Shown here in pieces: positions 25,868-44,561 of a DNA stretch of 64,000 bases (position 1 is its first letter; each line of letters begins with the position of its first letter). Where the stretch lies: positions 124,001-188,000 of the IMG/VR virus record IMGVR_UViG_3300029908_000004; one strand, 5' to 3'. The notes beneath the pieces are model-generated. The model searched no databases and was not told the DNA's origin. It saw nothing but the letters and a program-made list of their open reading frames with translations. A program made the translations under genes and the position numbers.

Positions 25868-26389
25868 ATGATTATTTATCAAGCGACATGGCCTGACGGC
25901 TATACTGTCAAGTGGCGCAACCTAACTTGGGCAGAATATCGTAGAATAGAACCATCATACCTAGGAGCCTCTTCTAGGTTTTCTTATCCTATGGGGGCTT
26001 ATTTAGATGTATACAAACTAGTGATGCTAGATGGGCCACTCCCACAATTTGTGCCAGCGGGAATAGTAGCATACGTTGCTATACAACAGCTAAGTACTAA
26101 CCCATTCAATGGTACCTATGATGATATAAAAGGTCAATTATATTTATCTAGACAGAGATTAGAATCTAGTTATCTAGAAACAGCGAAGTGCTTGATAGCT
26201 GCAGCATTTAAATATAGATTCGAAGAAATGGAAGATTGGGATCCAATAACTTTCTTTGATATGTTAGCAAGAGCAGAGAAGGTATTGGGCCGGCTAGCAG
26301 AACCAAATAACCCTAATGAAGTTAAAGCCCCATCAATTCCAGAAGATGTTAAAAGAGAAGCATTACATAGAAATAGAAGGAAAAAGTAA
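25868..26389 (+). CDS. Putative tail assembly chaperone 2
   Basis: 173 aa; stop overlaps the ATG of the giant gene (TAATG). Confidence 0.5.
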   Translation: MIIYQATWPDGYTVKWRNLTWAEYRRIEPSYLGASSRFSYPMGAYLDVYKLVMLDGPLPQFVPAGIVAYVAIQQLSTNPFNGTYDDIKGQLYLSRQRLESSYLETAKCLIAAAFKYRFEEMEDWDPITFFDMLARAEKVLGRLAEPNNPNEVKAPSIPEDVKREALHRNRRKK

Positions 26390-29300
26390 TGGCAAAAGCA
26401 CGGAAGCCTAAGAAGAATATGTTTATCCTAGATATTGAAACCTCCCACACTAATTGGGAAGAGCTCAATCGTCTAGAAGGAAAGTTTTCTATCAGAGGGA
26501 TCTTCGAAGCTTCCAAAGAAGGTGCTTACGGCACTTCAGCTTTTTCTACTGCCTTTGTTAATAACCAAATCCTTCAGATGCATATTGAAGAATCTAAGGC
26601 ATATAGGAAATTTTCTGCTGATGGATCTAAGGTATATAAGAAAGGTTCTGGTTATACAAAACTATTCCTAGATAAGAATCATATCCTACCTTATAGAGAT
26701 ATCGTTAAGAATGTTGAATTTCCTATATTCTTAGACAAGTTTTCTAATGACATTGCAGCAGATGCTTTAAAGTACGCCACTCTTACAGAGGAGCAACAGC
26801 TAAGAAGACTCTTCCAAGCTGTGCAAGGAAAATCTATAAAAGCTGGTGGTCCTATTCAGCTTGCTGGATGGAATGTAAAATATGACATTGCTTCTCTTAA
26901 AGCCTCTGCAGCTAGATACTCCTCTCTAAATAAATATGTAGAATTCTTTGATAAAGCCTATGCTACTAATAAGATACAGTTTGTAAGCTTAGAAGACGAG
27001 TTGTTTAAACAAGTATGGACGCATGCTTCGCAGAATCCTGACTTAATGCGTCATCTTACAGATAAGGCTCGTGCCAGAACATTTGATCTTACATTAGAAC
27101 TTAAGAGTTCTGAAGATTTAAAGAACGTTCCGGGTTGGAAAGCTTCTAAGATAGCTAGAATGCTAGGTCTTGGAGAAGAACTTCATCGTGCAGCCGCAGA
27201 TGTAGCATTAGAGAGAATGATATACGAGGCTGTAATTACAAACGGTCTGACTCTAGAGCACATCAAAGCGATGTATGGTGCTTGGAGAACCGAAGCATCT
27301 TCTATAAAAGAAGTAACAGAAGTTATCGGTGACATAAGACCACTAAATGGGTTTGCTTTACTAGCAGGAGCCGCCGCTGCAATAGCAGCGGGCTTAGCAT
27401 TCAGTACCAGATCCTCTAGACAGACTACTATTGTTGGTTTATCAGATAATGGTAAAGCCAAGGATTCCAGACACAAACACACCTCGTTTGGTTCTGGATG
27501 GCACGGACTAGGAGAAGATAATAGTAGCTTAAATTATAAAGCTCTTGGCGCAGCTGGCTTTGCTGCAGCAGGGTATTCCTATTTCCGTAAGGTTATCGTT
27601 CCAGGAAAAGGACCTTTCTCTGTAGATAAACTACACAGCTTTGTAAGTACATTAGAAGATTACAGCCCATTTAAAATTGGTAGAACTTTTGGTATTAGTC
27701 AATACATAAGTTCTTATACTACTCCTAGTAAATTACACGTTGGTTATAGTGAATTAGTAGGACAGGGTGGTAAATATACTGAGTTAGGTGAACATTTTGA
27801 TCGCCTATTTACTGGTTCTAATGTAGATTTACGTTCCCAAAAAGGGTTGAATTTTATAAGGACTGATTATGGTCCTTATATGGAACTTGAGGGATACGGA
27901 GGAGACGTCCGTGCCCGTTTTACAAAGCGTGGAAGTCTATCTAGTTCTAGTTATAGATACAACAAACCTCTTGAAAATGTTCCTGTAACTTTCCTAAAAG
28001 AGAGTACTCCTTGGGAAACTATTACAAAGAACTTTGGTCGCCTTCGTCATTCACAAGAACCAACTGGTTATAAAGGTGCTATCAGTGTTGGCGAAGAAGT
28101 AGAAGGTGTCTTCCAACCATATCTAGTTAATATAAAGAGTAGAGGCAAATTATTTAATTTCGCCGAAACTGCTAATAGAACAGCTCTTAGTCAAGCCGAA
28201 CGTGTACAGAGATTATTATCTGATATAGGGTTAGGATTAAAAGAAGGTACGTGGAATAAAGCTTTTCACGTCCCTATAATAGGTGAGGGTGGTTTAGTTA
28301 ACCAGCTTCTTACTAAGAGATTCGCTCCAGCAGCTCTATTAGTTGGATTAGCCCTTCCTTACATAGATTATAAAACTGGCCATTCTTTAAGCGGTATAGC
28401 ATTAGATACGTTCCAGCGCTTTAGATTAGCCCATGCTTCCCTTACTGATCATTTTCTGCGTGGTGTAACAGATAAATATGAACAGATTGTACCCGGTCCA
28501 CAGTACGGTCCATTAGCCTTACCAGTATCTGGAGCCTTTGTTGGTGGGGTACTTCAATACTCTAATGTATTAAGAACTAGATACACAAAGGGAGAAAAAG
28601 CAGCAGAGTTACTTCGTTCAGGAAGTAAATTCTTCTCCGCCCCCGGACAAAAGTCAATCTTAGGTATCCTAAACCGTGAGAATAAGGGTGCTGTTGGTGT
28701 AGCTATTGGACTAGCGCTAATGCTTCCCTTCATTCCGGGGATGATTGGGTCTAGGAAAACAAAGGAAGAACTACAACGGACATACTCTGGTGAGGATCCA
28801 GTAGAAATAAAAGCTGGTCGCTGGTGGGATATGGGAACCACAGCGTTAGAAGGTGGTCGTGTAAAGGAGTATCGCCCACACTGGTCTGTTCTATGGCGCG
28901 CACAAGCAGAGAAGAAGGCTTTATATGGATCAGAGAAAGAGTACTGGAGACATAACCCGATACTTCATCCATTACGCTGGTTAAGAGATCCTTATTTCCT
29001 AGAAGAAAAGCATTATGAGGATAGGCCATACCCAGAGACTTCACCTGCGTTTACTAATGTTCCATTAGTAGGACCACTATTAGCTTCTACTATTGGTCAA
29101 ATTGTAAAACCAATCAGGAAGATGCATCCAGAGTGGGATACAACTGACTATACATTAGGGTCAACTCGTCTAGAACCGAGAGGTCCTAAAGCATTACCAG
29201 CAGCAGAACCAACATCAGAATTCTCTTTAGGTGACACAGCTCAAAGATCAATTAAAGCTGCTACTGAATTCGTTGGATTGCCGGGCTTTATCGGGCGTAG

Positions 29301-31365
29301 CTTATGGAATAAAACTTTCCCTGGATATGGATCTATGGGTGAGAATGTAAAGTTCCAAGGTTCCCGACAAATGACTAATTATAGTCGTAAATACTACGAG
29401 CTAGAACTAGGTGCTGTATCTGGTGTAAGTCCTGACTTTGAATTATTTGGATATTCTGAACCTTTCCGTCGTTTCGTACAGAACGAAGGAAAGTTACTTC
29501 AGGCTAATAGTATTAAGAATAAAATGCCTTCTTGGCTTCCTGGAGAGGATTATTTTATTAACTTCAGAACAGGTGACCCTTATGTAAAGATTTCAACTGG
29601 ATTCGCTCGTCTGCCGGGTGAGGGTTATGCAGCTCTACACCCAGAACTAGAAGGTGTCAGTCCAGAGGATTACCCAGATATGGAGAAATTACGTATCTTA
29701 GGGGATGTAGCACCATATTCTAGAGAGTTTGCTATCTTCAAAGGAAAGGTTAGGAAGGACATCAGAGGAGATACAGAAAGTTTAGCTGAGTATGAGAGTA
29801 TTATGGCTCGCGCTAATAAGATGCGCAAATCAGTTATTCGGACAGAGGAGCAGAGGTTCTCAAAGGATGTAGAAGAAACCACTGGAACAGTAAAAGCTCT
29901 AGGCTCAGCTGGTGTAGAGTTAAATGAATATCCGGGTCGTATATTTAGAATGAGCGGCGTTTCTACTACTGCTGCAGATATGTCTGCCGTTGTATTATCA
30001 CAATATAATGATATGACGAAGGAGGATGCTGCTAAGGAAATAGATGTAAGAAGAGCTGAGCTAGATAAATTCTTATCAGATACTTTCACTGCTGGCACAA
30101 AAGTAACGGCTACTTTCCAGAAAGGGGCTTTAGATAAAGAAACTAATATACGATCTGTATTAGAAATAGATGGATTAAACATCAATAAAGCTATAGTTGG
30201 TGAGGGTTACGGTACCTACGATAAAGCTTCTGCTGGGGCTGAATGGCAAGCTATGTTCAATCCAGCAGAAAGATTACTAGGAAGGTACGCAGAAGAAGCC
30301 TCATTCGCTGAAGAAGCACCTTGGTGGAACCCCCTTAGATGGTTACCTACACCTTATCATACCAAGCTGTGGCAAGAACGTTCAGCGCTAGCTCAGTACG
30401 TAGATCAAGAAACTGTCGGAACTCGTATGCGTAGGTGGGATAAGCCGATTAAAGACTTCTTGGCTCCGTATTACCATGGGCTATTACATAGGGTAAGCGG
30501 AGAAGTATTTATTCCAGAGGCAACAGTAGAAAAGCGGAATTTAAATACTATGGTAGATATGTTAGATTATCTACGAGATTTGAATTTAGCTTCTACCGAC
30601 TCTGAGAGTCGTGGCAGGTATACTAGTAAGGCTAGTAGGACAGCTATAGGTGCAAATCTTACTGGGTCCACCACTTTCCTAGGCTCCACACTGCCTGATC
30701 GTGATACTAGATACTTCAAAGAATTTGTAAATTCTACTGACGATGAGGAAAGACAGAAGATACTAGATGTGGTGCCAGATGAAATGGCTAGAGCTTTAGA
30801 AGCTCAGTGGGCTGGTAAAGAGGCACAGATAGCAGAGTCTGAAGGCAAGGAGACTAATATACAGTTCTCTGGTGGTCGCCTTGTGAATAAAGAAGGTCTT
30901 GATCGTTTCAAGAAAGCAACAACAAAGCTCGATTATGGTGATTATGAAAGGTCCTTAGAGATATCTGATTTCTTCGCGAAGACTGGATTATCAGTTCCTG
31001 AATCAGATTCAGCGTTATGGGACCCAAACATTGATTATGAAGACGTAAAGCTAAAGATTATAGAGATGGAAGGTCGTGATTACCATGACTTCAATATATT
31101 TGATGATAGAGCTTCATTACTTTGGCGTAAACCTTATGTAGATGGTGCAGTACAAGAGTTAACGTCTGGAAACGATCGTTCGGAAGAACAGATTAGAAGA
31201 CAAGTTGAGCGACTTATGCTAGCAGCTAAGAATCCTAATGCTAACCCTTTCACTAGTGGTCACCCATCTCAAGATAGTAGGGGTAGCGCTACCATTAATG
31301 TAAACGTGGATCAGACTGAAGAGTTGCTAAAAGATATGCGACGTAATCCGGAGAATTATGATTAG
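26389..31365 (+). CDS. Giant tape-measure-position protein with an N-terminal DEDDh 3'-5' exonuclease and a possible degenerate SNase-like domain
   Basis: ExoI ILDIET (D15, E17), ExoII AGWNVKYDI (D166) and ExoIII HRAAAD (H266, D271). Several G/A-rich hydrophobic segments follow. IFRMSGVST...LEIDGLNINKAIVGEGYG resembles a thermonuclease fold. It follows the tail chaperones. Confidence 0.7.
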   Translation: MAKARKPKKNMFILDIETSHTNWEELNRLEGKFSIRGIFEASKEGAYGTSAFSTAFVNNQILQMHIEESKAYRKFSADGSKVYKKGSGYTKLFLDKNHILPYRDIVKNVEFPIFLDKFSNDIAADALKYATLTEEQQLRRLFQAVQGKSIKAGGPIQLAGWNVKYDIASLKASAARYSSLNKYVEFFDKAYATNKIQFVSLEDELFKQVWTHASQNPDLMRHLTDKARARTFDLTLELKSSEDLKNVPGWKASKIARMLGLGEELHRAAADVALERMIYEAVITNGLTLEHIKAMYGAWRTEASSIKEVTEVIGDIRPLNGFALLAGAAAAIAAGLAFSTRSSRQTTIVGLSDNGKAKDSRHKHTSFGSGWHGLGEDNSSLNYKALGAAGFAAAGYSYFRKVIVPGKGPFSVDKLHSFVSTLEDYSPFKIGRTFGISQYISSYTTPSKLHVGYSELVGQGGKYTELGEHFDRLFTGSNVDLRSQKGLNFIRTDYGPYMELEGYGGDVRARFTKRGSLSSSSYRYNKPLENVPVTFLKESTPWETITKNFGRLRHSQEPTGYKGAISVGEEVEGVFQPYLVNIKSRGKLFNFAETANRTALSQAERVQRLLSDIGLGLKEGTWNKAFHVPIIGEGGLVNQLLTKRFAPAALLVGLALPYIDYKTGHSLSGIALDTFQRFRLAHASLTDHFLRGVTDKYEQIVPGPQYGPLALPVSGAFVGGVLQYSNVLRTRYTKGEKAAELLRSGSKFFSAPGQKSILGILNRENKGAVGVAIGLALMLPFIPGMIGSRKTKEELQRTYSGEDPVEIKAGRWWDMGTTALEGGRVKEYRPHWSVLWRAQAEKKALYGSEKEYWRHNPILHPLRWLRDPYFLEEKHYEDRPYPETSPAFTNVPLVGPLLASTIGQIVKPIRKMHPEWDTTDYTLGSTRLEPRGPKALPAAEPTSEFSLGDTAQRSIKAATEFVGLPGFIGRSLWNKTFPGYGSMGENVKFQGSRQMTNYSRKYYELELGAVSGVSPDFELFGYSEPFRRFVQNEGKLLQANSIKNKMPSWLPGEDYFINFRTGDPYVKISTGFARLPGEGYAALHPELEGVSPEDYPDMEKLRILGDVAPYSREFAIFKGKVRKDIRGDTESLAEYESIMARANKMRKSVIRTEEQRFSKDVEETTGTVKALGSAGVELNEYPGRIFRMSGVSTTAADMSAVVLSQYNDMTKEDAAKEIDVRRAELDKFLSDTFTAGTKVTATFQKGALDKETNIRSVLEIDGLNINKAIVGEGYGTYDKASAGAEWQAMFNPAERLLGRYAEEASFAEEAPWWNPLRWLPTPYHTKLWQERSALAQYVDQETVGTRMRRWDKPIKDFLAPYYHGLLHRVSGEVFIPEATVEKRNLNTMVDMLDYLRDLNLASTDSESRGRYTSKASRTAIGANLTGSTTFLGSTLPDRDTRYFKEFVNSTDDEERQKILDVVPDEMARALEAQWAGKEAQIAESEGKETNIQFSGGRLVNKEGLDRFKKATTKLDYGDYERSLEISDFFAKTGLSVPESDSALWDPNIDYEDVKLKIIEMEGRDYHDFNIFDDRASLLWRKPYVDGAVQELTSGNDRSEEQIRRQVERLMLAAKNPNANPFTSGHPSQDSRGSATINVNVDQTEELLKDMRRNPENYD

Positions 31366-31379
31366 TCCCGGGAGGGTAA

Positions 31380-32444
31380 ATGAAACCAGCCAAAGCGGTA
31401 ACGCTGGATCCTGATCTACGATGTGGAGATGCTATCGAATTTGAGAACAATCTTCTAAAGAATGTAATTGGACAAGAAGACGCTATTAAGAAAGTAACTG
31501 AGGTAATTGGTACTTATATGGCCGGCTTACAAGCCCCCAACAAACCAATTGCTAATGTATTATTTCTAGGACCCACCGGCGTTGGAAAGACAAGATTGGT
31601 GGAAGTAGTAACAGAAGTTCTTCTAGATAGTGACTCGTCTTGTATTAAAATTAACTGTGCCGAGTTTCAGCAATCACACGATATCGCTAAACTCACTGGG
31701 TCTCCTCCCGGATATGTGGGACATAAAGAATCAATTCCATTTATAACTCAAGAACGATTAAATAAATGTCATACCAAAGATGTAAAGTTATCAGTTGTTT
31801 TATTCGATGAGCTTGAGAAAGCACACCAGTCTTTTAGAGAGCTTTTACTAGGAGTAATGGATAAAGGCATACTACGTATAAGTAGTGGAATAGACGTAGA
31901 TTTTACCAGTAGTATAATATTTATGACATCTAACGTAGGTGCTAGATCAATGAGAAATTTGATTAAACCTATGGGGTTTGATACTGGTAAGGAAGATACA
32001 AAGTTAGATATAAAGCTTTGTGATGTTGCTGTAAACGCCATGCGTAAGGACTTTTCACCAGAATTCATTAATCGTCTAGATAAAGTTATCGTTTTTAAGA
32101 GCCTAAAAGAAGAACAGATTAGACAGATTCTTCGCATAGAAGTAGATCATATACAGAGACGAATATTAAATTCTAATAATCTTCGGAAGTTTGTCATAAT
32201 CTTGGATAAACAGGCTGAAGACTACTTACTAGGATTAGGTATAAGCACAGAGTACGGCGCTAGAGAATTAAGACGAGTATTAGAAAAGAACATTGTGGTT
32301 CCTATTAGTAGTATGCTTCTTAGCTCACAGATTAATCTTGGTGATGTTGTAAGAGTTTCAGTTAGAAACGGTTCCCTATACTTTGATAAAATTCCTTGTG
32401 AAATAATAGATAAGCTACCAGAATGTCTTGAAATAGAGGCTTAG
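31380..32444 (+). CDS. Stand-alone Clp-family AAA+ ATPase (ClpA/B/C D2-like)
   Basis: VIGQEDAI, Walker A GPTGVGKT, pore loop GSPPGYVG, Walker B VVLFDELEKAH, sensor-1 MTSNVG, PEFINRLD and sensor-2 YGARELRR. Confidence 0.9.
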   Translation: MKPAKAVTLDPDLRCGDAIEFENNLLKNVIGQEDAIKKVTEVIGTYMAGLQAPNKPIANVLFLGPTGVGKTRLVEVVTEVLLDSDSSCIKINCAEFQQSHDIAKLTGSPPGYVGHKESIPFITQERLNKCHTKDVKLSVVLFDELEKAHQSFRELLLGVMDKGILRISSGIDVDFTSSIIFMTSNVGARSMRNLIKPMGFDTGKEDTKLDIKLCDVAVNAMRKDFSPEFINRLDKVIVFKSLKEEQIRQILRIEVDHIQRRILNSNNLRKFVIILDKQAEDYLLGLGISTEYGARELRRVLEKNIVVPISSMLLSSQINLGDVVRVSVRNGSLYFDKIPCEIIDKLPECLEIEA

Positions 32445-32846
32445 ATGGAAGAACAAATAATATCAGTTACCTCCACTGACAATGCTATAACTCATCTAAA
32501 ACGATTTCGCAAGAATTGGGATGGCCATAATTGCCCAGCCATCAAAATTAAGGCGATGAAAACGTTAGAAGTTATATTGAGAGATATAGAGGATAGTAAG
32601 TTAACATTTCCTAAAATACTCCCTCTACACGACGGGGGAGTTGGTTTAATGTGGGCTTCTCACACCAGAGATGTCGGATTAGAAATAGCCCCTAATGGTG
32701 CACTATCATTTGAGTTTAGCCTTAAAAAATATGACGTAACCGGTGAGTTATCTGGTGAAGAAACCTCAGTAGGAACTCTTTCTTGTACAGCAAGCGTGGA
32801 TTATGTCCTAGCTTGGTATTCTAGTGATAAAGCGGGTTCTGTTTAA
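32445..32846 (+). CDS. Hypothetical protein
   Basis: 133 aa abutting the ATPase stop codon; NWDGH...P...DGGVGLMW pattern; no function assigned. Confidence 0.6.
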   Translation: MEEQIISVTSTDNAITHLKRFRKNWDGHNCPAIKIKAMKTLEVILRDIEDSKLTFPKILPLHDGGVGLMWASHTRDVGLEIAPNGALSFEFSLKKYDVTGELSGEETSVGTLSCTASVDYVLAWYSSDKAGSV

Positions 32847-32913: not shown

Positions 32914-35900
32914 ATGACTATAATCAGTTCTACAGTACTGTCTGTTGCAAACTTAATAAAACGTCATCATGGCGTATTAGCAGCTTCTGCTATCGTCCCA
33001 TTCTTCTATGACAGCGAAGATCGTGGCTATTTCAGGACAGCGATGATTACTACCCCAATACTGTTCGCTGGGGCAGAGATGTTACCAAAGCTATTCAGCA
33101 CGGCTAAGACAGAAGCTGAGTCTGTTTTCCATGCTACTATGAGTACTGCTAAGAATCCTATATTTAATACAGCACATAATATTGTTGGTTCTGATTTATC
33201 TAAGCTTGCAGAGGATGGTACTGTTGGTATACGAACTGTTGAAGAAGCTCAAGCTAGATATTCTATGGGATTAGCAAAGGCTCGACCAATAGAAGACATA
33301 AATAACTTATACAGTAGAGCCACAGGTCTTCTTAAGGCAACTGATCAGAACAGAAGAATGATGTCACAAGCAGTTGTGTCTTCAGCACAGGATGCTATGA
33401 CGCCTTATGATTGGATTAGTACACCAAAAGTTCTAGAAGGGTTGCTTGATAAAGATAATAGAACCAACGTATCTATGTCAGACGACAAAATGTTAGAGAT
33501 TGCTGAGTTCTTCAAGGGCAGAGGAGATACCAGATTCCCAAGAAGATTACAAAGTAATATGGATAGAATAGAAGGGTTAGTAGATCAAGGTGCTTTTGTA
33601 CCAGCAGGGGCCACCTTCTTTCCACCAGATGTAGTCACTAACTTACAAGTTGGCTCGTGGTCAGAGGCTATTGAAGAGAAATTGAGTAATGCCGGAGCAG
33701 GTGGAGTTAGCAATATCCTAAAGAATAGGTCTAACCTTGATAAGTTAAACCTTCAGGTAAAATTAGTTTCTCAAGGAGTTATAGACGGCAGCACCGCTGA
33801 TGCTTCCTATATTGATTTTGTCAGAACAATGAAAGATGTAGAACAGAGTATACGTATACCTATTCCAGATGCTAATGGGGCTGTTCGTATTGGTCCATAC
33901 ATAGGAACAGCTCGCTCTGTTATGGATTATGATGGAAAGATATATCGTATTGATGAGTGGGTAGCTAAGATGGTTACCGAAGGTAATGACTATACTGAAA
34001 AACAATTGATGGGGGATATTAATCGTGCTGTATTCTTCACAGCTCACGACCCAGCAGATACAGAGGCGATATACTCTCAAGCTGGATCTAGATTTGGCAA
34101 GAATTTCGCCGGAGAAAATCAGGTTAGATTAAAATCACAAGCTGCTGTATTAACTTCTCTACCTAGATTCAAAATGGGTGATGAGGCTGTAAGCTTTGAA
34201 AAGTTAGACCCACTATTTCAGTCAGATTTCGAGAGGAAATTAATCAATAGTGGAACTGTGTCTATGATGGGGCCGGAGTCTGCTTGGGGTAATAGAGTTT
34301 ATCAATTGCGTAAGATGGAAGATTTTGCTATGGGCGGAGTGGCAGACGTAACAAAGCAGGATTGGAACTATCGTTCTCTATCTAAAGGTGTATCGTACGA
34401 ATTCGTACAGAATAAGAATGGACTAGATCTTAAACCAAAGGTCTCGACTACAGCTTATGAAGAGTTCCTTGGTACCAAGGAAGTACCAGAATTCAATATG
34501 AGACTTGCTGGTATTTCTCCTCAAGAGAAGACACTCCTTGGTGATTTTGGTATGTATAAGACTTGGGAGGAAGCACAAGCTTATAAGCCATTGTTTATAG
34601 AACGAGCTATGGAAATGAATATCTCTCCAGCAAAAGCTGAAAAAGCTTTTAATGACATAGAACATTTCTATAGAAGTAAGACAAAGCTTGATAAATTTGG
34701 TAAGCCCAAACTAGGGTATGGTGCTACTATATTCGAACAAATTGGTAGCCTTGGTGAGACCGATATCATCATATCAGACGCGCTAGCGAAGACTGGTAGA
34801 CTAAAGTATACGACCACTTATGAAGTAGATCAGATGCATTTCAATCCTGAGGATTGGGTTGGTAAAGATGTCGAAGATGATTTCAAATTTGGTACTAGAC
34901 AAAATAAAGTTGTGAGCCCTGATTCTGGTGGAAAGATACTTTCTACCAAGGCTGCAGATGAGTCTACTTATCATATAATAATGGAACATTATCAAGGTAT
35001 GGACGCAGCGAAACATGATACTTTCGGTGTAAAGGGAGAATTCCATACAGGTACCTATCAAGGTAATTTCCAGACTATGCTTTCAGCAATAAATGATTTC
35101 AGAAAAACAACAAGAACGGGAGATGTAATAGATAAATATACCGTTAACGGTATTGCTGATTGGACTTATGCTCAAAATAAGATGGACCCAATGTTGCTTC
35201 GTATGTCTATAGCAGAGGATACCCTACATAATATAAGTTCACGAAATAAAGCTGTTGGAGAAGAATTAATAAGTTCTGCTACAGAACAACTAGCTAAAGT
35301 TGGTGTAGACTATACTGATGGACAAATGATCTTCCAGCACGAGTTTATTCGTAAGCAATTTGCCTCTAGAGAAGCTAAGATCGCTAATATGGAGGAACTT
35401 AACAGCGTTATAGATAAGATTATGGCTGATGCTACAGCTTCTATAAGAAGCAAGAAGGGTCTTGGGTATAAAGTCTATCAAGGGTGGTATAATAAAACAG
35501 GTAGTGGTATAACAGATGACGTACAAGCAGGTAAGAGTCTTGAAGCTTATATGCTACGTAATGGTGTAAATGTAAACGTTAGAACTTGGGCTCATGCTAA
35601 TATTAATCTTCCAGAACATGCCACAGTAACTCATGATTACGATACTTTCTCAAACCTAGGGGATAAGAGAGTTATGGCTGCTGAGCTTCGGAATCGCCTA
35701 CAAACTGTTGGCGAAGGCGACCCAGAAATGAGTATGCTATACGGTCAATATCTTCAAGATAATGATTACACCAAACCTATGCGTGAAAGTGAAGATGTAG
35801 TAGTAGATTTAGATAAAGCTTTCTTAGGTAGCGCAAAGCTATCAAGACCTGAGGGGCGTCATGGAACTATATTTGATCCATCCGATTCAAGATATAAGGA

Positions 35901-37839
35901 AAACTTTAGAGTAAAATACCTAGACAAAGAGGGTAAACCACAGTTCATACCTGTCCCGGGGACTGATGCTTATATGTCTATAAGCCCAGAATATAATAAA
36001 GAGAAAGGCGTAGGTTACCAAACTCATGACTGGCAAAATCAATTACATAATATTTATAACGAGGAAAAAGCTGGTAATATCGAAGCTAGAGACGCGTTAA
36101 TAGAGGGTATTAAACGAAAAGGCGGTTCAACCCAAGGAATAATAGATGCTATTCACGATGACCTATTAACAGGGAAGAATAGTGCTTGGAGACCACGTAG
36201 CTATGATCCATTAGGTAGATCTGGATACATCACGACCCGTGGAGGAACCGCTGAACCTTTCATAGTAGGTATCTCCTCAGAAGAATTAAAAGCGCTACCC
36301 GCCAGTATACAACAAGGTATAGAAAAGCAAGGATTTGGCACTGCTTTACTCGGACGCCAGCCTTATGGAGATGCGGTTGCAGTTAAAGTAATAGAAGATA
36401 AACATTTAAAAGGAACCAAGTTCTTTAGTATCAATGAAATAGTTCGTATGTTAATAGGTGCTGATGATGACCTTGATCCAGCCAACCTACATTATTATGC
36501 TGCTGGTTCAACAGGTGAAGCAGAAGCTCTAAGGGTAATGGCACCCGGTGGTAGACAAGCTAGAAGAGTAGAAAACTTCCGTGCGTTAATGGGCTCAGCT
36601 GACGAAAGTGCCTCAGTAAGAAATCCGGTACAAAAAGACTTAGCTGAGAGACTAGCTAAGAAACTTGCGCTAATGTCTAATCTAGAAGCCGCTGTAGCTA
36701 ATAGGTCTGCAGCAGAGGCTACTGGTACGTTATCCCTTGCTTCTGGTAGAATGTTAGCTCACATAGAGAGATCTCCAGCATTTAAGAATAATGAGGTAGT
36801 GCGTGATTATTTAACAGATATAGCAAAAAGATTACGTCAAGCGCCTATTGATGCTCGTAAGACTCAGACTTTGTTCAATAAACAAATGGCTATGAATATA
36901 GCAAATGAAGTTAAGGAATCATTTAAACTTGGCACGAGTGGCGCTGAAGGTAGTATAAAACAAGGTGCTGAAATGTTAAGGCGGGCTGTATTAAAGGAAG
37001 GTATTCTAGTTCCAGTTGATTGGAATCCTGTAATGGGAAAGAGATTTAATATTCCACAACCCCTTCCTGAAGAAATAGCAAAAGGTGGTGGTAAAGTTAA
37101 TGCAGCTGCTAGATGGTTAGAAACGCCCGAAGGAATAACAGCCAGTGAAGACTTAATGAAAGGTGCCACTAGAGAAACTGAGAATTGGGTAGATATAACA
37201 AGTGGTGTTCTTACTGGTGGAAAGAAAGTTACTAGAGAGATATACAATAAGTTAGAAGCTAGTGTTCCACCAACATTCCGTAAAGCATTTATGGCTATGA
37301 GTAGCGCAGCCGATTTAGGAACTATCAATACAAAAGCTGCGGCTGGTGCTTCTATGAGATCTATCGCTTCAACTGTTACCGAACTCTTCCGTGGAGATTC
37401 AGGTAAAGTTCTTGGTGTAGGTTTAGCTATTGCTGCTGGGGCTGGTTTACTATTTAATAGACCTAGGAATCCAAAGCAATTAGCAACAGCTAAGATGTCT
37501 AGACCAAGTGGGCATAGACCGGAAGAACGTATAGGAACTGACGGAGCAATACCCGGAGAGCCAATTACGGGGTCTATGGCACCAACTAATCCTCCTAAAT
37601 CAGTTAGATATGTAGAAAAAGGAGTGAGAACTACAATGGTGGCTCCAATGAATAGAACCTCAAACGTAGAAGCTACGATTGTAACTGACAGTGCTAGACA
37701 AGGTGCTGACTATTCTAGAGCTGCTGCTATGATGTCTAGTAATGGTGATGTAAACGCCACGATTAATTATAAAGTAAATAATAAGTTAGGAAGTCTCAGA
37801 AATAGAGAACGCATCAGAGAGATAAGAGACGAACAATAA
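32914..37839 (+). CDS. Putative single-chain two-barrel (DPBB) DNA-dependent RNA polymerase in the tail module, likely virion-associated
   Basis: beta-like motifs: GETDIIISDAL (E615) and KHDTFGVKG (K700, K707). beta'-like motifs: LLTGKNSAWR..LGRSGYIT..IVGIS, LLGRQP, IGADDDLD (D1184, D1186, D1188), EAEALRVM and QAPIDARK. Hydrophobic segments occur at both termini. Confidence 0.78.
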   Translation: MTIISSTVLSVANLIKRHHGVLAASAIVPFFYDSEDRGYFRTAMITTPILFAGAEMLPKLFSTAKTEAESVFHATMSTAKNPIFNTAHNIVGSDLSKLAEDGTVGIRTVEEAQARYSMGLAKARPIEDINNLYSRATGLLKATDQNRRMMSQAVVSSAQDAMTPYDWISTPKVLEGLLDKDNRTNVSMSDDKMLEIAEFFKGRGDTRFPRRLQSNMDRIEGLVDQGAFVPAGATFFPPDVVTNLQVGSWSEAIEEKLSNAGAGGVSNILKNRSNLDKLNLQVKLVSQGVIDGSTADASYIDFVRTMKDVEQSIRIPIPDANGAVRIGPYIGTARSVMDYDGKIYRIDEWVAKMVTEGNDYTEKQLMGDINRAVFFTAHDPADTEAIYSQAGSRFGKNFAGENQVRLKSQAAVLTSLPRFKMGDEAVSFEKLDPLFQSDFERKLINSGTVSMMGPESAWGNRVYQLRKMEDFAMGGVADVTKQDWNYRSLSKGVSYEFVQNKNGLDLKPKVSTTAYEEFLGTKEVPEFNMRLAGISPQEKTLLGDFGMYKTWEEAQAYKPLFIERAMEMNISPAKAEKAFNDIEHFYRSKTKLDKFGKPKLGYGATIFEQIGSLGETDIIISDALAKTGRLKYTTTYEVDQMHFNPEDWVGKDVEDDFKFGTRQNKVVSPDSGGKILSTKAADESTYHIIMEHYQGMDAAKHDTFGVKGEFHTGTYQGNFQTMLSAINDFRKTTRTGDVIDKYTVNGIADWTYAQNKMDPMLLRMSIAEDTLHNISSRNKAVGEELISSATEQLAKVGVDYTDGQMIFQHEFIRKQFASREAKIANMEELNSVIDKIMADATASIRSKKGLGYKVYQGWYNKTGSGITDDVQAGKSLEAYMLRNGVNVNVRTWAHANINLPEHATVTHDYDTFSNLGDKRVMAAELRNRLQTVGEGDPEMSMLYGQYLQDNDYTKPMRESEDVVVDLDKAFLGSAKLSRPEGRHGTIFDPSDSRYKENFRVKYLDKEGKPQFIPVPGTDAYMSISPEYNKEKGVGYQTHDWQNQLHNIYNEEKAGNIEARDALIEGIKRKGGSTQGIIDAIHDDLLTGKNSAWRPRSYDPLGRSGYITTRGGTAEPFIVGISSEELKALPASIQQGIEKQGFGTALLGRQPYGDAVAVKVIEDKHLKGTKFFSINEIVRMLIGADDDLDPANLHYYAAGSTGEAEALRVMAPGGRQARRVENFRALMGSADESASVRNPVQKDLAERLAKKLALMSNLEAAVANRSAAEATGTLSLASGRMLAHIERSPAFKNNEVVRDYLTDIAKRLRQAPIDARKTQTLFNKQMAMNIANEVKESFKLGTSGAEGSIKQGAEMLRRAVLKEGILVPVDWNPVMGKRFNIPQPLPEEIAKGGGKVNAAARWLETPEGITASEDLMKGATRETENWVDITSGVLTGGKKVTREIYNKLEASVPPTFRKAFMAMSSAADLGTINTKAAAGASMRSIASTVTELFRGDSGKVLGVGLAIAAGAGLLFNRPRNPKQLATAKMSRPSGHRPEERIGTDGAIPGEPITGSMAPTNPPKSVRYVEKGVRTTMVAPMNRTSNVEATIVTDSARQGADYSRAAAMMSSNGDVNATINYKVNNKLGSLRNRERIREIRDEQ

Positions 37840-40800
37840 TGAGTATAACAATTAGTAACCCACAACTAGACGATCCAGAAAGTGGTTATTTTCGTATTGG
37901 AAATGTGATATTAAAGATTCCACCAGAGGATATTAATATCCATAAGACCTCTAATGTAGACGAACTTACTGCTTTAAGAGCTAAGTTCCCATACATAAAC
38001 GAAAGTGGATTCGCTCGTTGGGATGTGACGGTATCTTGGACAGCAGTATATGAGGAAAACCCTCAGAATTATTCTGATTCCCCAAGTTTCTCAGAGAATG
38101 ATGACCCACATTGGGCTCAATGGGAGGATGTACGCACCATTGTAGCTATGATGAAAGCTGCTCCATTTGTAGAAGTGGAGAATGATCTTGTACGTTCAGT
38201 TATTTCATCGAGGAATGACGAATCTTCATATTCAGGAATAGCTGTTACTGATAGTACTAAATATGTTCGTTTAGCTTTTGCTCTCCGTCAATTTAAGGTA
38301 TCAACTTCAGAGGATATAGTAGATGGATTAAAGTGTCAACTAGTTATGACATTATTTAATTATCTTCCATTTACCAAAGACTTCGCTTATGTAGGCACTG
38401 GTGGTTTGCCGGTAGACGCCACTCAATCAGATGCTTTTAAGAAGTATTTGAATGAATGGAAAGAAAATAATTTAGATGCTCCACAAGAAGGGGAATACAG
38501 CCCATGGCAGGAGCAAGACCCGGAAGATACGAGTTTTATTTGGCGGACTTATATGCCACAACCAGGGCTCCCTGTTGCTGCTCCAAGCGATTTAGATGTT
38601 GATGAATGGAAGTGTGACCATTTCACAGATGATATGACTTATAGATATAAGGAGAATAGATTACATCTAGATTCTTCAGATGGCTCAAGCTCTGAGGAAG
38701 GCTTATTTCCTACCAATCTCTCCGTTGTATTTGTAAATCAGTTTGCTCAATTACCATTAGCTAATTATCAATATCCTACATATCAACATATAGGCCCAGC
38801 AACTACCGTTATCTCTATGGGTATGGAATCTGATAGCGCTGAATCCCTAGGGGTAACTGGTTTAACTGGAATGATAAATGAGTTGAAGAAACAATTCTTA
38901 CAATTCCGTTCTTGGAAATCTGCTGCTAGTATTTATAATAGGCAGGCTATCCTAGTTCGTAATCAGTTCCTTAATATGCTAGGAGTATGGGGGCTTAACG
39001 TAGCAGAATTTGATGTATCTACTATACAGAATTCTGCTGGTAGATTATCTTGTACCCTCATGGCTAGACAATATGAAAACTACTATGAGTTATTAGATCC
39101 ATTTACTGTATATGGTAGTGACCATTATACACAACAATTGAGTAGTTATATTAGGTCCCCAGCCTTAACTGCTGGGCTAACTCAAGCTGAGCAATCAGGA
39201 ATGCAAAAGCTTGTAGCTTTTCGTAACGCTTGGAATGGCTACGACGATAAATATTTAGCGAATCTTTTATTATCTACAGACCCAACAACAGCGTCTACTT
39301 TAAAGACATTGCCTAGTATACCAATGCCTAGTGGGGTATCGTTGACCCCTACTGAGCAGGCTAATCTATTCTTAACACTTAAGGAAGAAAGCCCATTAAG
39401 TGCTACTGTAAGTAGGCTGCCCGGAACGGCTGGTTATGGTAGTACACCCTTCGATAGCAGTTATTGGCCTTGGTTAGCCGCTAAGAACAGCCCTGGATAC
39501 GTAATGTCTTATACAGACTATTGGGTGTTAACACGACTAAATACTTTGTCTAGTCAGAATGATCCAACTAGGTATCAAGCAGATTTAGCTATCCAACAGA
39601 AATATGACCCACAAGTAACCCAAGCCATGAAAGATCAGATATGGCAGAAGGCATTTGAACTATTGGCAGCAAATGACCGAGTAATGTCGAATAACTTGGA
39701 TCAAATAGCTCGTTCGAAATCTTTCAAAGACTCTCTTGATTCATCGACACAAGCACAAGGTTTATATAGTCCCGGGTCTGACCCATCTAATGGTAAACAT
39801 GGATGTTATAGGGACTTAGGGATTTATGATGGGGACCCGGCTGAATATTTCATTGATTATTCCAATGTGCTATTAACAACAGCTGCCCAGCAAATGGAAC
39901 AGAATTTATCTGTAATGTTAACTGGATTCAAAGCTTTTAATACAAAAAATCAGCAGGGTCAGGGAACAACAATACCAACTGATCTTTCAGATTTTGGTAT
40001 ACAAGAAGGTAATGTTTCTGGTATGCTCCTACGTTCTAATATACCAAAATATAGTATGAGGGGATGTTTCCCAACATTCAAATTATTTCTTATGGAGGAT
40101 AAGAACACTAGTATTTTCTATTGTTATGATAATTTCTATTCTTATGCCTCTGTAATTGATATGGAAATGATTAAGTATAGGGACAAGCCTGATACTGCTG
40201 TGATAAGAATTACAAACCTATCTGGTATGTTGTCATATAGATTATTCGATAACTCTGTACAAGGTAAGAGAGAATGGGAATTAAGCAATGATGTTAAGGT
40301 CCCTACTTCCCTTGACGGGTCACCAACGGTTAACCCAGGAGGTATGCCGGGTGCTGTAATGGCTGGTAGAATGGGCAATCATAACTATCAAGAGGGTCAA
40401 GGTAGTTTAAACTCCCCCGGAGAAACGTTCGTTACAAACCAACCTAAGGTGCCATTGCGGTATTACCCATTACAAACTGGATCAAAGATACAAGTACGTC
40501 TTGGTTATTCTAATAATCCAGACGGGTTATACCCAGTATTTGTTGGACAAGTCACACAAATAGATGAAGAAGACGGGATTATAACTCTTGTAGCTCAAAG
40601 CTATTTGACTGAGTTGGATACCTCTATGTCAGACGAAGTTAGCAGCGATGGTTTTTCTGTGCCCGGTCTTGTTGGTAACATAATTAATAGTGTTACTGAC
40701 GCTGCTATACGGCTAGTTAAATTCCAGCCAATGATGGCATTTCGTGATTTATGGGCGGGATTAACTTACGTTAGAGCTCCAGCTTACGGCGGATGGCTGA

Positions 40801-43034
40801 ATTTATCTGGGGATGGTGACGCTTCCAATGTAATAAAAGCGATTCTTAAGATAAGTCAGGCAAGACATTTTGGAAAATGGCAGATTGGTGGTTTACCTGA
40901 TCGTTATGTAAAAGGGTTTACATGGAGTGACACGCTTGCTGCCTTAGGAGGCACTGGACCAATTGCTTCGACACTTAATAATAGTTATGATAGGTCTGGA
41001 GCTAACATATTAGTTAATCATTTGGTTAATTATAGTGGAACAGAAGTTGTTGGTAAGTTCCCAGTTACTAGAAGTTGGACATTCGAACAGCCCGGTTGTA
41101 CAAAGCCTGTTTATCATATTAAAGGGGGAACAGCACGCACACCTTGGTTCTATATCAAAGATGTAGGACGTAGGTACCCAGATTACGTTCTAGCAGTTAG
41201 ACAATATGGGTTCCCATATCAGGCAAATGCTACTTGTATATTTGGACATCCTAATGATTTCTATTATTCTAGAGATTTAATCTTAGGGGAACTTACTGCA
41301 ATGAAGCTACAGCCTGCTGTAGCTAAACCTATCTTTGCAGATTGGTGGGATCACCAACAAGGTAGGTCTCAAACAGCAGCCATGCTATATAACTATCTCA
41401 TACCAGTGTTACCCGGCGTGCAGCCTGGGGACACTTATGTAAACACATTTATGAACAAGATAGATAGTACAAAAGACCCTAATGTTTATTTCCAACAATT
41501 AGACTCTCTAAATACTATGATAAACAGAACTGGAAACGATTTATTATCATGGTGGCCAGGGGTACAAAACTATCAGATGCAGTCTTTTAGAACAGAGGTG
41601 AATTATCTTCGTAACTCACTTGAATATTATTTAACTCTAAAGATAAACGGGACTATCGGTAAAGTTAATGAGGCGTTACGTATTCAACCAGTTCGTAGAT
41701 GGAATTACATAGACCACGAATCCATAATCCACAACGGTATAAAATTATCTGATAAATTCTTCAATACAATAAAGTTATCTGATGACACTCTATGTATAAA
41801 TGAGATGATACCAAGTCATCACCAACGGGTATTAGACGCTGACGAGCTTGTGGAGTCTGTGGATAAGAATTTAAAAAGTGGTGGTAATGAGCCAATGCGT
41901 CTAGCAACTATCCAGAGCTTCTTAAGAGAAGAATGTGGAAAGATGTATTATGGTGAATTAATTATTAAAGGCACACCAGAAATTGAGCCTTGGGATGTTG
42001 TAGTTATAACAGACCCAGCAACTGGTATGATGGGTCCCGTAGAAGTAGACTCCGTAATTCACACATTCAATCAGGAAATGGGGTTTATTACTATTATTAA
42101 GCCTAGAGCGTTGATAATAGTTAATGATGCTGCTTCCATGGGGTTATTGAATGGATATCGTTGGGCTTGGGCTAACGCGACCCAGATAATAAATGGGTAT
42201 AGTCAAGCTTATGGAGACGCTACAACGGCCATTGGTGTAACTACACCAACATTACTGGGAGTAGTAGCTGGTGGAACGGCAGCAGCCATCTTTGGCGGTC
42301 CTATAGGGGATGTTGTAGCAGTAATGGTTGCTGGTAGGGCATTTGCTACAGCTATAAATATCTCTACAAGAATGAATCTATGTATGGTGTTTCCACTTAT
42401 GAGATTTGGTAACCCTTGGGTGGGTGGTTTACAAGGATATCGAGCAGGTGATATAGTATATTGGTTAAAGGATCATTGGATACAATTTTATACTGATGAA
42501 ATAGCTCCATTAATGAGCACTTGGCAGGAAATAAAACAAAGCATAACACCATCTTTGCAGGACCCAACTATGACACCAAATCCTGTTCCCCCTATTTCAC
42601 CTAGACCACGATCTAAAATATCTAGTGATAAACAAGCAATCATAGCATTAATTCGTAAAGTAGCTGCTAGACCCGAAAACCAAGCGATGCCTGTAGACTT
42701 AGCCATAGCTCAGGCACAGCAAGAATCTACTCTTAACCCAAATGCTATAGGTCCAATGACTAAATGGGGGAAAGCTATAGGGTTATTTCAATTACTACCA
42801 AGTACAGCTGCTGGTTTACATGTAGACCCTTATGTTCCTGAACAGAATATACAGGGTGGTATAACGTATATGTTGCAATTATATGATAAGTTTCATACTT
42901 GGCCATTAGCACTAGCCGCTTACAATATGGGGCCGGGAGCTCTCCAGCACCATCTAGATAAGGGCACGCAATGGCCAACACAGACACAAACTTACGTATC
43001 TAATATTATGGGGCATTGGAATCAGAACTCATAA
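37839..43034 (+). CDS. Baseplate hub/tail-tip protein with a C-terminal lytic transglycosylase (SLT)
   Basis: Hub-type KIQVRLGYSNNPDGLYPVFVGQVTQI...ITLVAQS and GELIIKGTPEIEPWD. SLT motifs are QQESTLNPNA (E1629), AIGLFQLLPST, NIQGGITYM and ALAAYNMGPG. Confidence 0.82.
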   Translation: MSITISNPQLDDPESGYFRIGNVILKIPPEDINIHKTSNVDELTALRAKFPYINESGFARWDVTVSWTAVYEENPQNYSDSPSFSENDDPHWAQWEDVRTIVAMMKAAPFVEVENDLVRSVISSRNDESSYSGIAVTDSTKYVRLAFALRQFKVSTSEDIVDGLKCQLVMTLFNYLPFTKDFAYVGTGGLPVDATQSDAFKKYLNEWKENNLDAPQEGEYSPWQEQDPEDTSFIWRTYMPQPGLPVAAPSDLDVDEWKCDHFTDDMTYRYKENRLHLDSSDGSSSEEGLFPTNLSVVFVNQFAQLPLANYQYPTYQHIGPATTVISMGMESDSAESLGVTGLTGMINELKKQFLQFRSWKSAASIYNRQAILVRNQFLNMLGVWGLNVAEFDVSTIQNSAGRLSCTLMARQYENYYELLDPFTVYGSDHYTQQLSSYIRSPALTAGLTQAEQSGMQKLVAFRNAWNGYDDKYLANLLLSTDPTTASTLKTLPSIPMPSGVSLTPTEQANLFLTLKEESPLSATVSRLPGTAGYGSTPFDSSYWPWLAAKNSPGYVMSYTDYWVLTRLNTLSSQNDPTRYQADLAIQQKYDPQVTQAMKDQIWQKAFELLAANDRVMSNNLDQIARSKSFKDSLDSSTQAQGLYSPGSDPSNGKHGCYRDLGIYDGDPAEYFIDYSNVLLTTAAQQMEQNLSVMLTGFKAFNTKNQQGQGTTIPTDLSDFGIQEGNVSGMLLRSNIPKYSMRGCFPTFKLFLMEDKNTSIFYCYDNFYSYASVIDMEMIKYRDKPDTAVIRITNLSGMLSYRLFDNSVQGKREWELSNDVKVPTSLDGSPTVNPGGMPGAVMAGRMGNHNYQEGQGSLNSPGETFVTNQPKVPLRYYPLQTGSKIQVRLGYSNNPDGLYPVFVGQVTQIDEEDGIITLVAQSYLTELDTSMSDEVSSDGFSVPGLVGNIINSVTDAAIRLVKFQPMMAFRDLWAGLTYVRAPAYGGWLNLSGDGDASNVIKAILKISQARHFGKWQIGGLPDRYVKGFTWSDTLAALGGTGPIASTLNNSYDRSGANILVNHLVNYSGTEVVGKFPVTRSWTFEQPGCTKPVYHIKGGTARTPWFYIKDVGRRYPDYVLAVRQYGFPYQANATCIFGHPNDFYYSRDLILGELTAMKLQPAVAKPIFADWWDHQQGRSQTAAMLYNYLIPVLPGVQPGDTYVNTFMNKIDSTKDPNVYFQQLDSLNTMINRTGNDLLSWWPGVQNYQMQSFRTEVNYLRNSLEYYLTLKINGTIGKVNEALRIQPVRRWNYIDHESIIHNGIKLSDKFFNTIKLSDDTLCINEMIPSHHQRVLDADELVESVDKNLKSGGNEPMRLATIQSFLREECGKMYYGELIIKGTPEIEPWDVVVITDPATGMMGPVEVDSVIHTFNQEMGFITIIKPRALIIVNDAASMGLLNGYRWAWANATQIINGYSQAYGDATTAIGVTTPTLLGVVAGGTAAAIFGGPIGDVVAVMVAGRAFATAINISTRMNLCMVFPLMRFGNPWVGGLQGYRAGDIVYWLKDHWIQFYTDEIAPLMSTWQEIKQSITPSLQDPTMTPNPVPPISPRPRSKISSDKQAIIALIRKVAARPENQAMPVDLAIAQAQQESTLNPNAIGPMTKWGKAIGLFQLLPSTAAGLHVDPYVPEQNIQGGITYMLQLYDKFHTWPLALAAYNMGPGALQHHLDKGTQWPTQTQTYVSNIMGHWNQNS

Positions 43035-44109: not shown

Positions 44110-44561
44110 TGGCTACTACTATAACAACGTTAATACCCCCATCTCCTAATAACCCAAACTCTACGACTGAGATAATAGCTGATTATCGATGGATGTCCGG
44201 GGGAGGTGGAGTATTAATGGATGCCACTGGTGACATCTCTCTAACAACAACCAATATGGAAAGTATAAAGGATATCATCCAGTCTAGACTTAAGGCTGAT
44301 TATAGAGGATGGGCTTTATACAATATTGGAGCAGATTTACAGAGTTTTATGGGACAAGTTATTAGTTCAGAACTAACAACATCCTTAAGTCGTAGAATAA
44401 TTAGTTCTCTAACTTCTTCATTTCTACCAGCAGGGGCTATATCAATTAGAACGTTAGTTACTGGTGATATGGTACAGGCATTTGTATATGTAGCTGGTAC
44501 AATGGTGGCAACAGCAACAACAGATAAAAGTGGGTCTACACTAACGGTGGTAATACTCTAA
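44109..44561 (+). CDS. Baseplate wedge protein, gp25/gpW-like
   Basis: DATGDISL...SIKDIIQSRLK...GWALYNIGADLQSFMGQ; directly before baseplate J. Confidence 0.7.
   Translation: MATTITTLIPPSPNNPNSTTEIIADYRWMSGGGGVLMDATGDISLTTTNMESIKDIIQSRLKADYRGWALYNIGADLQSFMGQVISSELTTSLSRRIISSLTSSFLPAGAISIRTLVTGDMVQAFVYVAGTMVATATTDKSGSTLTVVIL

Follow-up and report, generated by a model that had tools for sequence, protein, structure and literature searches.

Virion-delivered RNA polymerases (RNAPs) make a phage independent of the host enzyme at the start of its programme, and to our knowledge only a handful of types are known, namely those of N4, the crAss-like phages, the phiKZ-like phages and P23-45. Here we consider a protein of 1641 amino acids (aa) specified by an open reading frame (ORF) at 32914..37839 (+) of a 64,000-nucleotide stretch of DNA, henceforth the window, which covers nt 124001-188000 of the 215,291-bp virus record IMGVR_UViG_3300029908_000004. 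By the ORF list and its translation, this ORF is intact, with zero internal stops. We argue that its product is very probably an RNA polymerase. That it is packaged in the virion and ejected for early transcription is a claim we put at a little better than even, and the statement that joins polymerase and virion delivery is one we consider reasonably likely. Unless otherwise indicated, all coordinates below are those of the window and refer to the + strand.

Several described enzymes bear on this protein. The gp96 protein of Thermus phage P23-45 is a two-barrel RNAP of the virion, which is encoded by a tail gene and fused to the tape measure protein (PMC10770324). The virion RNAPs of jumbo phages of the phiKZ/AR9 type are β/β'-like enzymes that are packaged and injected (PMC7598289, PMC4666361). 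The yeast linear killer plasmid pGKL2 codes for Orf6, an Rpb2::Rpb1-like fusion of 982 aa (PMC2919709). A 2021 survey of jumbo phages records two-barrel RNAPs only in group 1, in addition to YonO-like versions in the group 3 phages 0305phi8-36 and c-st; phage ME3, which belongs to group 2.2 in that survey, is not among the carriers (PMC7824862).

Predicted fold and conserved residues

AlphaFold2, run with an alignment of the family to which the protein belongs, gave a model of residues 480-1420 (model 1) with a mean pLDDT of 92.3 and a pTM of 0.90, and a model of residues 300-960 (model 2) with a pLDDT of 89.3 and a pTM of 0.86. When model 1 was compared with 350,542 chains of the Protein Data Bank (PDB) using Foldseek, 34 matches were obtained at E<=1e-3, and the top 50 are exclusively the largest subunits of RNAPs (probability 0.99-1.00, E 7.6e-5 to 1.2e-3). 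These comprise bacterial β', the N-terminal β' half of cyanobacteria and the Rpb1 homologs of Pol II, Pol III and Pol IV, and the best local alignments extend over 260-300 columns with an rmsd of 5-7 Å and 15-17% identity. The top 50 matches of model 2 are exclusively second-largest RNAP subunits (E 6e-5 to 1.3e-3, 39 at E<=1e-3), which come from bacterial and plastid β, Rpb2, A135, archaeal B and vaccinia Rpo132. As the N-terminal half matches β and the C-terminal half β', the protein appears to be a single-chain two-barrel RNA polymerase that runs from β to β'. A first-pass annotation, made from the sequence of the window, had proposed just such a cryptic enzyme, and the confident models, with only β/Rpb2 chains in the top 50 for the one half and only β'/Rpb1 chains for the other, bear it out.

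The β/Rpb2-like half with the first barrel corresponds to aa 300-960 (33811..35793), and the β'/Rpb1-like half to aa about 960-1420 (35794..37173), the latter containing the second barrel, a bridge-helix-like helix and later helices. The elements of model 1 follow one another as a β-rich region with a hairpin bearing K700 and K707, a helical connector, a second β-rich region, a 30-residue helix and further helices. The GK..R, R.P and DxDxD motifs discussed below all lie in the second β-rich region. In the predicted model, this is the order of elements expected of a fused two-barrel enzyme. With respect to the features that define the two-barrel superfamily, the predicted models contain both a β'/Rpb1-type and a β/Rpb2-type region, model 1 with its pTM of 0.90 reaching into both halves, and the DxDxD triad is present in the sequence.

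PolD, QDE-1, crAss gp66, P23-45 gp96/gp64 and YonO are absent from both top 50 lists, although the abundant cellular RNAP chains in the PDB could push others down; chains 2J7N (QDE-1) and 6VR4 (gp66), identified for the comparison from PMC10770324, are likewise in neither. Hence, of the structural comparisons proposed at the outset, that with RNAP β/β' gave matches, and those with YonO, gp66, gp96/gp64 and QDE-1 gave none within the top 50. Since the single-chain enzymes resembling RNA-dependent RNA polymerases (RdRPs) are missing from these lists, the protein looks closer to the multisubunit β/β' enzymes. A PolD-like DNA polymerase was considered as well and is unlikely, both lists being made up of RNAP subunits only, with matches that reach well past the barrels. 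Among the viral structures of BFVD, the best match (E 3e-9, 999 columns) comes from an uncultured siphovirus and is labelled 'minor tail protein', and the next is an unnamed protein. Uncharacterised proteins of phage ME3 (E 9e-7, 754 columns) and Microcystis phage MaMV-DC (E 2e-6) were also matched. These best matches carry no RNAP annotation, and below the best four stand RNAP subunits of nucleocytoplasmic large DNA viruses (NCLDVs), poxviruses and nudiviruses.

The family was assembled by two routes. A word-indexed search recovered six relatives with 21-50% identity, and a profile of residues 520-1400, run against 1.84 billion representative sequences, gave 92 matches at E<=1e-3, 65 of them at E<=1e-30. 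The family so defined amounts to about 90 sequence clusters, almost all 1500-1800 aa in length. Two weak profile matches in multiple stretches, P0077 and P0082, were set aside as false positives, since they are proteins with PKD and Calx-beta repeats. The family alignment comprises 67 sequences with 16-52% identity to the window protein, and a smaller alignment, A1, comprises 7. In the larger one, 34/941 columns are conserved at 85% or more.

The first-pass annotation had quoted a series of motifs, all of which lie where it had placed them: KHDTFGVKG at nt 35011-35037, DLLTGKNSAWR from 36160, LGRQP at 36349-36363, ADDDLD at 36460-36477, EAEALRVM at 36517-36540 and QAPIDARK at about 36838-36861. 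All 11 residues drawn from these and its other motifs (G614, E615, K700, K707, K1088, R1093, P1150, D1184, D1186, D1188 and K1316) belong to the conserved set, an overlap with a hypergeometric p of 2e-17 for residues that were picked for counting by the analyst. That all 11 fall within the 34 conserved columns argues that selection is concentrated on the positions of the would-be two-barrel active site, and the residues proposed to be catalytic are indeed among the most conserved of the family.

The predicted metal-binding motif, DxDxD (D1184/D1186/D1188; 36463..36477), retains each Asp in 66/66 sequences. Its version in the window, ADDDLD, had been regarded as an unusual variant; this was mistaken, for the family consensus is DxDxD with a variable x. 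KHDTFGVKG contributes K700 (60/63) and K707 (59/63), the candidate basic pair of the β-type barrel, which lie on consecutive strands of model 1 (E220-224 and E227-233) that form a predicted β-hairpin. The same half has a GETD motif (34753..34764; G614 in 60/62 and E615 in 57/62). In the β'-like half, GKNSAWR (36172..36192; G1087 65/66, K1088 63/66, R1093 63/65) resembles GKQGRFR, which we take to be the established β' motif, and RQP (36355..36363; R1148 64/66, P1150 66/66) resembles NRAP of β'. The candidate for the bridge helix is a 30-residue helix at aa 1257-1286 (36682..36771; H778-807 of model 1) with conserved R1264, G1271, S1274 and N1275. Finally, in the helices that come after it, there is RQAPIDARK (36835..36861; Q1309 62/64, I1312 63/64, K1316 62/64), for which we infer a role as a trigger-loop or NTP-contact element.

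As had been anticipated, automated annotation leaves this gene a hypothetical protein. The window protein matched no family in Pfam or PHROG, no PDB sequence whether searched as a single sequence or as a profile, and nothing by tblastn in 50,697 phage records; a Pfam search at E<=10 with 29 family members (the protein itself and 28 relatives) found no RNAP family and no PF05183. Comparisons of the family profile by hhalign with YonO, E. coli β', E. coli β, ME3 gp036, 0305phi8-36 gp146 and MaMV-DC ORF82L were non-significant (E 0.1-0.4), and from these runs only the placement of the alignments was used, not the scores. The sole match to E. coli β' (E 0.11, non-significant) places D1184/D1186/D1188 on NADFDGD and EAEALRVM on QLEARALM. 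The earlier pairing of these motifs is thus reproduced in its placement, with a score that falls short of significance. The sole match to YonO (E 0.16, also non-significant) sets DxDxD on the DNDGD motif of that protein, and the non-significant alignment with MaMV-DC ORF82L sets it on DFDGD. At the level of sequence, the profile comparisons are therefore individually non-significant yet consistent. That every one of those made with RNAPs is non-significant is what would be expected if the motif matches had arisen by chance in a protein unrelated to these enzymes. We consider such an origin extremely improbable: two independent models match only the expected subunit class within the top 50 of 350,542 PDB chains, and the residues flagged all belong to the conserved columns (p about 2e-17).

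The tail module and its counterparts in other phages

The window is the structural module of a large, uncultured myovirus, whose nearest cultured relatives, Acinetobacter phage ME3 and Bacillus phage 0305phi8-36, are both distant. The putative polymerase gene lies within a single co-directional structural operon, with the sheath on one side and the baseplate on the other. The order of genes in the module is portal-like and major-head-like, sheath, two tube-like genes, a giant of 1658 aa, an AAA+ gene, a 133-aa ORF and the polymerase gene; 3' of the latter come a giant of 1731 aa with a C-terminal SLT domain, three small ORFs and then the Baseplate_J protein. The tail sheath (19456..21525; PHROG tail sheath 1e-41, with tblastn matches to the sheath genes of ME3 and 0305phi8-36) marks the tail as contractile, and the Baseplate J-like wedge protein (44561..45766; Pfam Baseplate_J 3.5e-21, PHROG baseplate wedge 3.6e-29) marks the tail/baseplate module.

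The upstream giant (26389..31365) is related to ME3 gp035 (BLASTP 1e-54) and has a tblastn match to ORF145 (gp145) of 0305phi8-36, which, per its record, was detected in virions by mass spectrometry. It is followed by a Clp-type AAA+ ATPase (31380..32444) with AAA_2 and ClpB_D2-small domains (Pfam 1e-32 and 1.7e-15; PHROG ATP-dependent protease 1.7e-85) and, directly 5' of the polymerase gene, by the 133-aa ORF (32445..32846), which shares 26% identity (E 4e-16) with a 141-aa ORF in the related contig L001. The downstream giant (37839..43034) ends in an SLT lytic transglycosylase domain (Pfam SLT 5.4e-17; PHROG lytic tail protein and endolysin families). The coupling of the polymerase gene to this gene through TAATG, noted in the first-pass annotation, is real: the stop of the one overlaps the start of the other at 37837-37841. 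Around the polymerase gene, sigma-70-type promoter matches (47 found versus 53.9 expected) and terminator-like sites (18 versus 12.6) are at chance level.

This place in the contractile-tail module is conserved. A block consisting of the upstream giant, an optional AAA+ gene, an ORF of ~135 aa, the polymerase gene, the downstream giant, three small ORFs and Baseplate_J recurs in the related contigs that extend far enough, and its order is kept in five related contigs and in phage ME3. Three contexts (the window, L003 and ERZ1426850) have the AAA+ gene and two (L001 and ERZ1426829) lack it; the gene product could unfold or load the giant proteins of the tail module. The ~135-aa ORF, found at 9561-9986 in L001, is always directly 5' of the polymerase gene, has no family assignment and may specify an accessory factor or chaperone. 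The SLT match on the downstream giant is on record in both L001 and L003.

In ME3 the same slot, with the gp145-like giant on one side and the hub giant on the other, is held by gp036 (L006 28134-32945), a protein of 1603 aa annotated as hypothetical, with DHDQD at residue 1217. By tblastn and hhalign, it shows no significant sequence similarity to the window protein. Going by its size and motif, gp036 appears to be the ME3 entry matched in BFVD, and it is a candidate for a cryptic RNAP in a cultured phage. As for the MaMV-DC entry, we infer that it is ORF82L (L012 6652-17334, - strand), a hypothetical protein of 3560 aa with a canonical DFDGD at residue 2537, which is possibly a further unannotated giant protein containing an RNAP.

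In 0305phi8-36 the slot belongs to ORF146 (L007 18047-25660), a hypothetical tape measure by annotation, which mass spectrometry has detected in virions. Occupancy of the slot of a hypothetical tape measure gene (PMC2147016), together with the 'minor tail protein' label of the best BFVD match and a hydrophobic C-terminal segment like that of many tape measures, would suit a structural tail protein, either a tape measure or an occupant of the tail lumen, which retained an RNAP-derived fold and lost polymerisation. We regard this as very unlikely. The Asp triad in 66/66 sequences and the near-invariance of the Lys pair, GK..R and R.P, at an overall identity of 17-50%, point to purifying selection on catalysis, and residues 300-1420 are predicted to be folded, in mixed helix-and-strand domains and not as one long helix. 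Outside the domains modelled as folded, a tape would have only about 520 residues at its disposal; the protein is therefore not a classical tape measure, and its identification as one was rejected.

Some further observations concern the surrounding genes. Two paralogous genes after the sheath (22097-22807 and 22871-23920) match a PHROG labelled 'major head protein'; their counterparts in 0305phi8-36 are recorded as tail tube and tail tube paralog, which suggests that the PHROG label was carried over in annotation. Counterparts of the upstream giant in L003 and ERZ1426850 have Pfam matches to DUF559/MTES_1575 (endonuclease-like), which the copy in the window lacks. Fibronectin type III repeats occur in a 1563-aa ORF (11799-16490) of the head-to-tail part of the module. 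At the other end, a 1067-aa ORF without family assignment starts at 61064, passes the end of the window at 64000 and continues to L013 13171; the G+C content is about 0.51 at 62-64 kb, clearly above the roughly 0.40 of the window, and the ORF may encode a tail fibre or have been acquired recently. Beyond the window, a replication module on the opposite strand (L015 784-15660, nt about 191,400-206,250 of the record) converges on the structural module. It codes for an AAA ATPase, RecA, a DnaG-DnaB primase-helicase, a nucleoside deoxyribosyltransferase-like protein and a 393-aa protein with a weak match, below the cutoff, to sigma-70 region 4.

Proposed packaging, ejection and early transcription

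We propose that the protein would act as an active, Mg-dependent, DNA-templated two-barrel RNA polymerase in one chain. Its β/Rpb2-like half (aa about 300-960), with K700 and K707, would precede a β'/Rpb1-like half (aa about 960-1420) that would supply GK..R, R.P, the D1184-x-D1186-x-D1188 metal site, the bridge-helix-like helix and the RQAPIxARK element. The enzyme would be synthesized late, alongside the tail proteins, and the N- and C-terminal modules peculiar to the family, among them a Gly/Ala-rich hydrophobic segment, would serve to incorporate it into the virion. The enzyme would later be ejected at the same time as the phage DNA or before it, and would transcribe the first phage genes without host RNAP, like the virion RNAPs of N4, the crAss-like phages, the phiKZ-like phages and P23-45. 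Late synthesis and ejection are argued from the position of the gene in the operon and its translational coupling to the SLT tail gene; from the family-specific termini and the hydrophobic segment, which is of a type seen on both flanking giants too; from the consideration that an enzyme first made with the late genes serves mainly the next infection; and from the precedent of P23-45 (PMC10770324).

The N-terminal module (aa 25-65; 32986..33108) has invariant P29, R37-G38-Y39, T42, T46-T47-P48 and P58 in alignment A1, and its consensus is kept in the 67 sequences; it possibly serves virion incorporation. A Kyte-Doolittle scan picks out the Gly/Ala-rich hydrophobic segment at aa 1496-1514 (37399..37455), with the family consensus GKxLxxGLGxAAxAG, as a possible membrane-insertion or tail-lumen segment. 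Both termini had been described as hydrophobic from the sequence; the description fits this C-terminal segment, and the conserved N-terminus lies below the same hydrophobicity threshold. All three giants of the block, that is, the polymerase and both of its neighbors, carry such Gly/Ala-rich hydrophobic segments, the upstream one having two. The C-terminal module (37501..37836) is family-specific and reads RPEE..G..D..PGEP..G..A...PPR ... SLRxRExxRE in the invariant columns of A1. A search with this module only (aa 1440-1641) matched just same-size members of the family, and hence gives no evidence of a portable delivery module.

The evidence from fold and catalytic residues would be identical for an active RNAP that is not packaged, and that is co-expressed with the tail genes and transcribes late genes in the producing cell. 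A related lineage has a non-virion YonO-type RNAP, orf99 of 0305phi8-36 (PMC2147016). Such an enzyme is nevertheless unlikely here, given that the gene sits inside the tail operon, is translationally coupled to the SLT gene and has kept its synteny across deep divergence; the conserved termini and the hydrophobic Gly/Ala segment would also have no obvious use in a soluble polymerase, and a late operon could not be started by an enzyme whose own synthesis begins with it.

A two-barrel enzyme could also be ejected for a main job other than gene expression, such as transcription-coupled entry of the 215-kb genome, action on RNA templates or synthesis of primers. The evidence for ejection would be the same as for our proposal, the authors of the P23-45 study suggest that DNA entry is coupled to transcription (PMC10770324), and two-barrel enzymes of the QDE-1 type accept both RNA and DNA templates (PMC9508822). 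The present evidence does not separate such activities. The phage has a DnaG-DnaB primase-helicase, and so a replicative-primase role is not needed; the structural neighbors are DNA-dependent β/β' subunits, not QDE-1 or PolD. On balance, we consider a main job of this kind quite unlikely.

Several points weigh against the proposal of a virion-delivered polymerase. The fold is read from predicted models with Foldseek E-values only about 1e-4, and TM-scores are low because the matches are local. No sequence-level method, whether Pfam, PHROG, PDB or hhalign, gives a significant RNAP match, and what is claimed for the family is drawn from its sequences and predicted structures. The virion-proven positional counterpart, gp146 of 0305phi8-36, has neither DxDxD nor detectable similarity to the window protein, which implies that related lineages have different proteins in this slot. 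The 83 kb covered of the 215-kb genome (the window and about 19 kb beyond) yielded no second RNAP and no early-promoter motif, no dedicated search for such motifs having been made. Finally, the folded core of about 1100 aa is too large for the lumen of the tail tube. The polymerase could be stored in the head, in a hub cavity or, in an unfolded state, in the tube, and the neighboring Clp-type unfoldase is suggestive in this respect. Our most extended version of the virion-delivery proposal is a tentative one, less likely than not: an unrecognised lineage of minimal RNAPs with fused β and β' in contractile-tailed jumbo phages, which would be cargo of the tail lumen or hub, loaded by a Clp-type AAA+ unfoldase and the terminal modules and injected for host-independent early transcription. 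If it is true, and if ME3 gp036 and perhaps MaMV-DC ORF82L are counterparts, tail-gene-linked virion RNAPs would be far commoner than is known.

Comparison with described polymerases

In the literature searched in full text, including the 2021 survey (PMC7824862) and a 2026 review (PMC13282480), the family is not described; this coverage was incomplete and an earlier description is possible. On the virion-delivery proposal, about 90 sequence clusters, hypothetical in every annotation library tested, would join the virion RNAPs as one more family, with a single-chain β-to-β' design for which the yeast killer plasmids provide the other known case. The gene for such an enzyme would, moreover, belong to the tail module of jumbo phages with contractile tails, and one must then ask how a folded core of some 1100 residues could be stored and later ejected. 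The family further offers evolutionary material on the relation of multisubunit to single-chain two-barrel polymerases, and phage ME3 provides a cultured system in which the idea could be tested.

The closest known system by function is P23-45 gp96, by architecture pGKL2 Orf6 and by type of host and virus the phiKZ-like virion RNAPs. Like the window protein, gp96 is a single-chain two-barrel RNAP among the tail genes, at or next to the position of the tape measure, and the role proposed for the two is the same, transcription of the first genes by an enzyme that is ejected. It differs in belonging to a siphovirus and in forming the N-terminal portion of a tape measure of 5002 aa, whereas the window protein has 1641 aa and comes with a contractile tail. 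A long tape of the gp96 type is absent, as the polymerase core is followed by only about 220 residues and family members keep to a length of 1500-1800 aa. The two proteins share no sequence similarity, and there is no gp96 chain in the Foldseek top 50.

Orf6 of pGKL2 shares with the window protein the succession of a reduced second-largest-subunit half and a reduced largest-subunit half, and the resemblance to multisubunit enzymes instead of QDE-1. It is a product of a eukaryotic cytoplasmic plasmid and not a virion protein, and the likeness noted here is one of architecture. The single-chain enzymes SPbeta YonO, 0305phi8-36 orf99, phi14:2 gp66 and QDE-1 also have two barrels and DxDxD, with gp66 being virion-borne. 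The window protein is set apart from the YonO/QDE-1 group by the lack of a PF05183 match and by flanking domains that match β/β' over 260-600 columns. The phiKZ/AR9-type enzymes are, like it, β/β'-like and found in jumbo myoviruses. They are made up of four or five polypeptides, which sequence comparison suffices to recognise, and their place in the virion is the head; the window protein, in contrast, is a single chain, goes unseen by Pfam and PHROG and is the product of a tail-module gene.

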